From Andalucia godoyi And28 (lineage: Eukaryota; Protista; Jakobida), in NCBI GenBank assembly GCA_009859145.1, contig VRVR01000001.1, positions 264,463-328,462 of the forward strand: a DNA stretch of 64,000 nucleotides, written 5' to 3'. The notes below the pieces were generated by a model that was given only the letters and a program-made list of their open reading frames with translations, had not been told where the DNA came from and made no database searches. The position numbers and the translations under genes were made by a program. Positions 30,264-32,805 of the stretch are shown piece after piece (the stretch's first letter is position 1; each line of letters opens with the position of its first letter).

Positions 30264-32805
30264 CTACAGCTGTTTGTCGTGAACCTTTTTCCAGATGCGC
30301 GCCAGGATTCGTTTTGCCTCGCCCTCGGGAAAGTCCTCATTGACTGCGAAAAAGTGCGGGGCAGCCTCGATGAGCCATTCAGGAGAGACAGCAGTGACGG
30401 TGCGAATGTATTTTTGCGAAGTCCACACAAACTCGTTGTAGACGACCCATTCTGGTTTGTAGGTGATGGACGTGGATGGGTGGAGGAGGACCGGCTGATT
30501 GTCCTTGACGACCATCCAAAACCCGGCTCGCTCGAGGTGTGCGACCTGCATGAAGAATCCAGCGATGACGGTCTTTTGGACGGATGCATAGAGCTCTCGA
30601 CTGTCCCGGGGAGACAACAGCGGAAGCCGCAACTTCTGCATCAAGCGCACAAGCTGGGTGCAAATGTCGTCCGCCATGCGCAGCGATCGCGGGTTCAGAT
30701 ACCGGCGACGGCACCATACGTCGACACTGGAACGAGGCTGCGACTTGTATGCGGTGTACACTTCCAGCAGGGTCAAATGATCCCCTTCCGAGTGCTGGAA
30801 GTCGCGATGGCTCTCATCTGCTTCGCGCTCTCGGTCCTTCTCCTTTGGGCGCACAAACGGCGGTTGCACTATGAATCATACAGAGCAAGTTAGAGTTACA
30901 GTATTAATATTATTAAAATAAAAAAATTGTTTCGAAAGGAAGAACAAGGAAAAACCAAAGGGAGGATCACGGGAGAGAAGCGATCAGTTCAGTTATGGAA
31001 AATACTCATCAAAAACGATTGATCAGAATTAGCATGGAAAAGTAATCATCATTTCGCTTCTCGGCACACACCCACCTCCACGTTATAGAAATTTTGGCAA
31101 AAAAGAAAAGAAGGAGAAAGGAAAGGAAAGGAAAGGAAATGGACATACCGGAAAGCATAGAGGCAAGAATGACGGCCTCATTGGAACAGTGGAACTTTGG
31201 ACTGGCGACGATCATTTTGGAGAGCTGCGGATCCAGAGGAAATTCCGCAAGAAGATGGCCATCGTGTGTGAGGTTGCAATCGTCGTCGAGAGCGCCGAGA
31301 GAGTGTAAGAGCTCAAGTGCGCGCATCATGACTTCTGGAGCTGGCGGATCAATAAAATCAAAGTGGACAAGATCGTCAACGCCGATCTTTTTGAGTTGCA
31401 ACACAACCATCGCCAGATTAGTGCGCAATATCTCGGGAAAACTCTGTGGCATCAGATCGGATGCATATGACGCCTCTGTGTACATCCGATAGCATTTTCC
31501 TGGCCGCGTACGTCCTGCACGCCCCTTTCGCTGGTCCGCTGCAGCCTGTGAGATCGGCGTGACCTGCAACGACTCGACGCGCGTCCGCGGATTAAAGATC
31601 TTTTGCTTTACAAATCCCGGATCGACCACAAACACAACTCCGTCAATTGTGATGGACGTTTCCGCAATGTTTGTCGCCACAATCACTTTGCGCACGCCTG
31701 GGCCAGTCTTGCGAAACACCTTTTGCTGCTGCGCGGGAGGAAGCGACGAGTACAAGGGCAGACATGACAATCCCGATCCACTCTCGCCTTCAAGGCGCCG
31801 ACACGCATCTTCAATCTCGTCTTCTCCTGTCAGAAACAATAGAATATCGCCTCCGTCCACAGGCTCGGTGCGGTGGATTGAAAGGACGGTTCGCACAGCC
31901 TCTTGGAAATAGTCACGTACGGGCTCAGGAGCATAAACAACCTGCACGGGAAACATGCGACCGGGAATCGAGAGCAGTGGCGCACCACCAAAGTATTCCT
32001 GGAACTTGCGGGCTTCCAGAGTAGCCGACATGACCACGACGCGTAAGTCCGGTCGTGCGGCCTTTCTCTTCCCCTTTCCGTTCGCATCACCATTGCTGCC
32101 GAACAGAAGCCCCTTGAGAAGACCCATGAGGATATCCGTAGCTACGGTGCGCTCGTGAGCCTCGTCAATCACAATCACCGAGTACCGCGACAGCAGCGGG
32201 TCAAACATGGCCTCACGAAGAAGCATGCCGTCCGTCAGATACTTGAGACGTGTCACTCCAGGTGTCGATCGATCCTCAAACCGCACGCTGTATCCAACTG
32301 CTGTGCCAAGCTCCACATCCATTTCCTCTGCAACTCGCGTCGCAACACTCATCGCAGCCACTCGCCGTGGCTGTGTGCACGCAACACACATCGGCCCAGC
32401 TGCCGCACCATTCGAGAAGTGCGGTGATGCTGATGGAACAGATGGAGAACTGGACAGAAACTGCGGATCCAGAGCCAAGAACTGCGGAATCTGTGTTGTT
32501 TTGCCGGATCCCGTCTCTCCCACAATCACCGTCGCCCGGTTCTGTGACACCAGGGAAAGCACCGTGGATTGGTGTTCATACACTGGAAGCCGCTTACGAG
32601 TCGCCAACAGTTCATGGTATCGTGAACTGTACACTTCCCCAGTCATTGGATTGTTCGTTGCATGCGTATGTGTATGTGCATGTGCCGGATCTGTGCTGGG
32701 TGTGGACGTTGTGTGAGACCGTGGCTGTTTCGAAGACCGAAATGAAGAGGAAGTGTCAGAGGGAGAAGAGTCGTCACGAGAGGACCGCTTCAATCCAGAA
32801 GACAT
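30264..32805 (-). CDS. DHX15: DEAH-box RNA helicase Prp43/DHX15; complement(join(30264..30868,31149..32805))
   Basis: [50 protein letters not shown] and the OB-fold region DHLTLLEVY...YNEFVWT. One 280-nt GTATGT..TAG intron gives SMLS|VQPPFVRP. Confidence 0.95.
30975..31062 (-). ncRNA. Intronic box C/D snoRNA, mgU6-53 (SNORD8/9)-like guide for U6 Am53
   Basis: 9-bp terminal stem GAGAAGCGA/TCGCTTCTC, box C ATGATGA (31046-52), guide CCATGCTAAT (31028-37), D' CTGA (31023-26), C' TTGATGA (31006-12), D CTGA (30984-87). The guide is complementary to U6 AUUAGCAUGG. Confidence 0.88.

Follow-up and report, generated by a model that had tools for sequence, protein, structure and literature searches.

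The Prp43 intron and its box C/D snoRNA

The stretch analysed here, a 64-kb window from contig VRVR01000001.1 of the jakobid Andalucia godoyi And28, contains on its minus strand a gene for the DEAH-box helicase Prp43 (DHX15), whose only intron almost certainly holds, judging by its sequence, a genuine box C/D small nucleolar RNA (snoRNA) in the sense orientation. Removal of this intron, of 280 nucleotides (nt), restores a protein of 753 amino acids (aa) with DEAH, HA2 and OB domains and 100% identity over 100% of its length to the eukprot entry ANDGO_02245. An earlier note on this DNA had described a single, unusually long DHX15 intron with a sense-oriented snoRNA at 30975-31062, bearing a perfect 9-bp terminal stem, boxes C, D', C' and D, and a guide followed by U and CUGA; all of these are present, on the minus strand. 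The features of the locus, in window coordinates, are the following:

31149..32805, minus strand: exon 1 of Prp43/DHX15, start codon ATG at 32805, from the spliced open reading frame
30869..31148, minus strand: host intron, 280 nt, GUAUGU...CUAAC...UAG, phase 1; its removal restores the frame identical to ANDGO_02245
30264..30868, minus strand: exon 2 of Prp43/DHX15, stop codon included, from the spliced open reading frame
30975..31062, minus strand: whole predicted snoRNA with terminal stem, 88 nt, from sequence reading and about 20 full-length sub-threshold Rfam box C/D matches
31054..31062, minus strand: terminal stem, 5' half GAGAAGCGA, nt 1-9, pairing perfectly with nt 80-88
31046..31052, minus strand: box C AUGAUGA, nt 11-17, read directly
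31028..31039, minus strand: D' guide UUCCAUGCUAAU, nt 24-35, with the core CCAUGCUAAU at nt 26-35; complementary to canonical U6 AUUAGCAUGG (10 bp) and to 18S AUUAGCAUGGAA (12 bp)
31023..31026, minus strand: box D' CUGA, nt 37-40, read directly; a single spacer U lies between guide and box
31006..31011, minus strand: box C' UGAUGA, nt 52-57, read directly
30988..31005, minus strand: D guide GUAUUUUCCAUAACUGAA, nt 58-75, with matches of only 8-9 nt in the proxy ribosomal DNA (rDNA) introduced below
30984..30987, minus strand: box D CUGA, nt 76-79, read directly
30975..30983, minus strand: terminal stem, 3' half UCGCUUCUC, nt 80-88, pairing with the 5' half over 9 perfect bp

Read from 31062 to 30975, the 88-nt element shows a textbook layout, with the order GAGAAGCGA-A-AUGAUGA-UUACUUUUCCAUGCUAAUU-CUGA-UCAAUCGUUUU-UGAUGA-GUAUUUUCCAUAACUGAA-CUGA-UCGCUUCUC. 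Box C is separated from D' by 19 nt (ending in CCAUGCUAAU-U), D' from C' by a loop of 11 nt, and C' from D by 18 nt, so that boxes C and D, the 9-bp stem, internal D' and C' boxes and guide regions of 10 nt or longer, as expected in general of box C/D snoRNAs, are all found. The D' and D guide regions (minus strand, 31018-31045 and 30988-31005) have the octamer UUUUCCAU in common, which may be what is left of a duplication within the snoRNA, between its two halves, or chance.

When both strands of the window were scanned for RTGATGA...CTGA enclosed by a terminal stem of 5 bp or more, the 88-nt element was the sole result. Stems of at least 9 bp are expected only 0.01 times per shuffled window in the same scan, and the guide-plus-D' motif CCATGCTAATNCTGA likewise has 0.01 expected occurrences. 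These figures, together with the four perfect boxes and the sense orientation within an intron of unusual length in a genome with few introns, leave a negligible likelihood to the idea that the element is a chance motif or a decayed, unexpressed relic. What speaks for that idea is the outcome of the Rfam comparison, a check that the earlier note had proposed and that cut both ways. At gathering thresholds, the whole window gave zero matches. In E-value mode, however, about 20 box C/D families gave alignments over the whole of the element, among them snoU6-53 (RF00377; 26.2 bits, E = 0.0017, below its gathering score of 36) and the plant family snoR53Y (RF01279; 26.4 bits, E = 0.014 in a 600-nt search, below its gathering score of 43).

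The snoRNA occupies intron positions 87-174, with 106 nt from its end to the 3' splice site. The further plausible introns of the window measure 149, 125 and 110 nt, and in the A. godoyi genome introns occur in only about 12% of the genes examined, averaging 151 bp (PMC7050145). The surplus length of the Prp43 intron is roughly the snoRNA, which may be the reason for the retention of this intron in an intron-poor genome. The 5' part of the intron, upstream of the snoRNA, also holds a perfect (GAAAG)4.8 microsatellite at 31116-31139 (CUUUC on the gene strand), inside a long pyrimidine-rich tract.

By analogy with established small nucleolar ribonucleoprotein (snoRNP) biology, the Prp43 pre-mRNA would be spliced and the lariat debranched and then trimmed by exonucleases, until trimming is halted by the snoRNP (Snu13, Nop56, Nop58 and fibrillarin) on the C/D kink-turn and the 9-bp stem. 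The D' guide would then pair with UUAGCAUGG, and fibrillarin would methylate the A that faces the guide's fifth nucleotide, counted upstream from D'.

Probable targets of the D' guide

According to the fifth-nucleotide rule, counted upstream of D', the target nucleotide is the one opposite U32 of the snoRNA (window 31031), which pairs with an A. In canonical U6, this nucleotide is the A within UUAGCAUGG, which belongs to the catalytic AGC triad (human A53). The earlier note had proposed this same nucleotide, and the guide indeed selects it, as does the snoU6-53 consensus at the same offset. The note missed, however, that the same 10-mer occurs in the 18S ribosomal RNA (rRNA) of most eukaryotes (AUUAGCAUGGAAUAAU), where the selected A is yeast 18S-A796. 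One guide fits both U6 and 18S because the two RNAs have this 10-mer in common. From these complementarities, the snoRNA probably targets the equivalent of 18S A796 and, with slightly less confidence, also the AGC-triad A of U6.

Neither the 18S nor the U6 of A. godoyi is encoded inside the 64-kb window, and motif scans for both in the viral_contigs collection gave 0 matches. The spliced Prp43 protein and the open reading frame of exon 1 likewise had no entry in the contig collection. The 18S sequence was therefore represented by proxies, obtained by scanning the prokaryotic genomes of one collection for the 10-mer preceded by a conserved motif of 18S. The 118 contigs recovered (L121-L238), filed as bacterial or archaeal assemblies or metagenome-assembled genomes, hold eukaryotic 18S rDNA as contamination, and nearly all of them read AUA[U/C]AUUAGCAUGGAAUAAU. 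One contig has, at L122:4395-6194, a full SSU_rRNA_eukarya of 1800 nt (1818 bits, yeast-type), in which the A concerned is nt 796. Most of the contaminant contigs read like this small-subunit sequence at the two sites examined. For U6, the canonical target sequence is assumed, an assumption that the consensus guide of snoU6-53 supports.

The D' guide goes on 5' of its core with UU, which lengthens the pairing with 18S. Against the typical proxy 18S it forms 12 contiguous Watson-Crick pairs (-16.9 kcal/mol), while against the U6 sequence assumed here (...GGCC...) it forms 10 bp and one G·U next to D' (-14.9 kcal/mol). The UU extension thus favours 18S over U6, with 12 bp versus 10 bp. Both energies are close to the means of the fungal family, which are -17.3 kcal/mol for 18S and -13.8 kcal/mol for U6 (PMC5824354).

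Related guides were sought in metagenomes with the pattern TGATGA-N3-14-CCATGCTAAT-N-CTGA-N20-50-CTGA, and at least 120 loci with a C box, N3-14, CCAUGCUAAU-N-CUGA and a further CUGA were found, comprising at least 88 distinct snoRNA-like sequences. Among the matches listed, 29 of the 88 distinct sequences carry UU as the two bases 5' of the core, which pair with 18S GGAA; guides of this class reach 12-15 bp with 18S, and many resemble fungal snR53 with its conserved D guide CCUUUUCAUCUUUCG. A second class, with G at this position (GCCAUGCUAAU), accounts for 32 of the 88 and forms 11 bp with U6 (GGC), many of its members being about 120 nt long, like animal mgU6-53. The remaining class described, with A 5' of the core (17 of the 88), lengthens neither pairing. 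On the bases next to its core, the predicted snoRNA of the window belongs to the UU, or 18S-type, class. Outside the guide, none of the 88 environmental sequences among the matches listed shows likeness to it; in the comparison made for its closest relatives, L037 and L064 share the 16-mer ACUUUUCCAUGCUAAU. In several environmental eukaryotes, the snoRNA with the CCAUGCUAAU guide comes in tandem copies, 140-270 nt apart (three in L009 and in L074, two each in L014, L034 and L064), which look like putative polycistronic clusters rather than single intronic genes.

The UU class bears directly on the possibility that the snoRNA is a plain snR53 orthologue acting on 18S alone, with the U6 match as a mere by-product of the 10-mer and U6 left unmethylated by it. 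This class corresponds to the fungal snR53-like sequences, the pairing with 18S is the longer and more stable one, and snR53 of Saccharomyces cerevisiae acts on 18S only, in an organism whose U6 has no 2'-O-methyl groups (PMC5824354, PMC5855946). However, the 10 Watson-Crick pairs and the G·U with canonical U6 are the core duplex of the animal U6-53 family, the 18S pairing was computed on proxies and not on the 18S of A. godoyi itself, and Arabidopsis is methylated at both sites with one assigned guide (PMC8053127). An 18S-only guide is, on balance, unlikely.

The opposite possibility, a dedicated mgU6-53 orthologue whose complementarity to 18S is irrelevant, is distinctly improbable. It has in its favour that core guide and D' spacing do not differ from the snoU6-53 consensus, that SNORD8 and SNORD9 guide U6 Am53 in vertebrates (PMC7960923), and that the conservation of ribose methylation in U6 extends to plants and Schizosaccharomyces pombe (PMC5855946). 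Contrary to all 32 U6-type environmental sequences listed, however, the window guide has UU instead of the G (GCC) extension, and typical 18S offers the same 10-mer and two further matching bases; the plant snoRNA, moreover, has been assigned to both sites (PMC8053127).

Human 18S is not known to contain the 10-mer, so the animal family would be U6-only. Position A48 of Arabidopsis U6 is presumably the AGC-triad A, by our own count on the sequence that we take for this RNA. In Arabidopsis, a RiboMeth-seq study assigned SnoR53Y to 18S-A801 and U6-A48 and detected ribose methylation at both (PMC8053127). The D' element of yeast snR53 guides 18S-Am796, and in fungi outside the Saccharomycetaceae U6 is predicted as an additional target (PMC5824354); among these guides, CD11 of Neurospora crassa is an snR53-type guide and intronic (PMC2780460). 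The best explanation for the window snoRNA, and one that can be favoured with moderate confidence, is that of an intron-encoded 2'-O-methylation guide able to address both 18S and U6, as in plants.

Several points weigh against this dual-target guide. Both pairings rest on proxies (contaminant 18S and canonical U6) and not on the RNAs of A. godoyi itself, so that the targets are deduced from these proxies and from how the family behaves elsewhere, while expression and methylation are predictions. The U6 of kinetoplastids diverges just 3' of the AGC triad, and conservation of the target within Discoba can therefore not be assumed. The Rfam scores fall short of the gathering thresholds for snoU6-53 and snoR53Y alike. 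Since guides are dictated by their targets, shared guides could also reflect convergence instead of common descent. Finally, a target search with the D guide GUAUUUUCCAUAACUGAA across the 118 proxy rDNA loci gave only matches of 8-9 nt, none of them convincing. The best of them is 18S UCAGUUAU near nt 105 in the proxy rDNA. Human 18S presumably reads UCAGUUAUGG there, which would give 10 nt and G108 as target, a lead and not a result. Compared with U1, U2, U4, U5 and U6, in the sequences that we take for these RNAs, the D guide matched nothing contiguous.

Host gene and neighbourhood

The earlier note had also suggested that hosting in Prp43 could couple the supply of the guide to the spliceosome. 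In its stronger form, the snoRNA would have been placed in Prp43 by selection so that the supply of a U6 guide tracks spliceosome-recycling capacity. What favours this idea is thematic: Prp43 disassembles intron-lariat spliceosomes, and in human cells the 2'-O-methylation of U6 depends on the Prp43 cofactor TFIP11, although the authors of that work describe the effect as DHX15-independent (PMC8599867). The related loci do not bear the idea out, as tblastn found no Prp43 match in any of the 120 among the matches listed. Copies of the U6 type (GCC) at L019:4743-4818, L118:3099-3179 and L119:4166-4249 adjoin exons of an SNF2 helicase, the exon downstream of the L019 copy carrying an HTH_CHD6-9 domain, and another environmental copy comes after a PEX1-type exon. 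Human SNORD8 and SNORD9 lie in CHD8 (PMC6466398), and the CHD6-9-type hosts of the animal-like copies suggest an old host synteny within animals.

Since hosts differ among the copies, the host is lineage-specific, and coupling to the spliceosome is left unsupported. The snoRNA, furthermore, probably serves 18S as well. Prp43 works in ribosome biogenesis too, and an 18S guide would thus be equally at home in its gene. A host-coupled regulator is therefore very improbable, and the residence of the snoRNA in Prp43 is most likely incidental.

The neighbouring genes, all on the same strand, are the following:

33398-35959, minus strand: DEAD-box helicase of 853 aa, directly upstream of Prp43
29330-29971, minus strand: Mpv17/PMP22-family protein
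28420-28968, minus strand: EF-hand protein

Two RNA helicase genes, those of Prp43 and of the 853-aa DEAD-box protein, thus adjoin on the same strand. The regions 20326-20538 and 36154-36410, flagged as longer introns by a heuristic, were dropped, as they look like intergenic spacers. The spacer at 36330-36450 (minus-strand view), likewise flagged by the heuristic, contains microsatellites of the types (GTAT)n, (GT)n, (GC)n and (AT)n with an AT-rich tract after them, and looks intergenic. No tRNAs were found within the 64-kb window.

Relationship to known guide families

The consensus sequences of snoU6-53 and snoR53Y both carry CCAUGCUAAU-N-CUGA, and the guide and its spacing to D' are identical to those of the window. 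The snoU6-53 guide, (U)GCCAUGCUAAU-N-CUGA, is matched in its core 10-mer and spacing, but the pairing partner of U6 C60, a G in that family, is a U here. Assigning the element to the SNORD8/9 type, as the earlier note did, is thus borne out for the core and its offset, but misses the snR53/SnoR53Y family, of which this guide is the defining feature. Judged by this guide, the predicted snoRNA belongs functionally to the family known as snR53 in fungi, SnoR53Y in plants and mgU6-53 (SNORD8 and SNORD9) in animals, of which it is an ordinary, previously unlisted jakobid member. No snoRNA reports on jakobids or other Discoba were found in the literature searched.

Rfam files the snoU6-53 and snoR53Y families as unrelated. 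A shared ancestry of the 18S-type and the U6-type family would be plausible. A tentative scenario, possible but doubtful, is that one guide, present in the last ancestor shared by eukaryotes, served to methylate the AGC-triad A in U6 as well as A796 in 18S through the common 10-nt sequence, and that sub-functionalisation later left yeast snR53 with 18S only and animal mgU6-53 with U6 only, whereas the jakobid and plant copies keep the dual state. The suggestion that this guide is ancient is plausible, although guides of this type had already been described in animals, plants and fungi. To that family the window adds a representative of Discoba, which supports the great antiquity of the modification guide, and a single guide sequence can address the catalytic RNA of the spliceosome and the small ribosomal subunit. 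For the genome of A. godoyi, the snoRNA provides a ready annotation and may account for an intron persisting in Prp43 where most genes have none. It reveals no new mechanism, and the idea of guide-host coupling remains without support.

One close counterpart is snR53/SnoR53Y (RF01279, clan CL00080). In both, the D' guide has CCAUGCUAAU one nucleotide from CUGA, and for the window guide the proxies predict the same 18S target, the A within UUAGCAUGG (A796 in yeast, A801 in Arabidopsis), with a further fit to the AGC-triad A of canonical U6. Like the guides of the fungal-type environmental sequences, that of the window extends over the GGAA specific to 18S, and the size is similar, about 75-95 nt; N. 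crassa CD11 is intronic too. On the other hand, the fungal D guide CCUUUUCAUCUUUCG targets the large-subunit rRNA (LSU) and the window D guide is unrelated to it, the host gene is another one, and the organism is a jakobid.

With mgU6-53 (SNORD8 and SNORD9), the snoRNA shares the layout of C box, guide and D', the core guide, the predicted U6 nucleotide A53 and its encoding within an intron. Unlike it, the animal members are about 110-125 nt long, with GCC at the 5' end of the guide, and lie in CHD8 or CHD6-9-type genes, whereas the window snoRNA has 88 nt and UUCC and lies in Prp43.

Compared with intronic box C/D snoRNAs in general, the element showed nothing out of the ordinary, except that the distance of 106 nt to the 3' splice site somewhat exceeds the mammalian optimum that Hirose and Steitz reportedly described in 2001 (cited in PMC2780460). 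As in the intronic box C/D snoRNAs of intron-poor genomes, the intron carries a single sense-oriented snoRNA, with a long terminal stem that would support splicing-dependent exonucleolytic processing.

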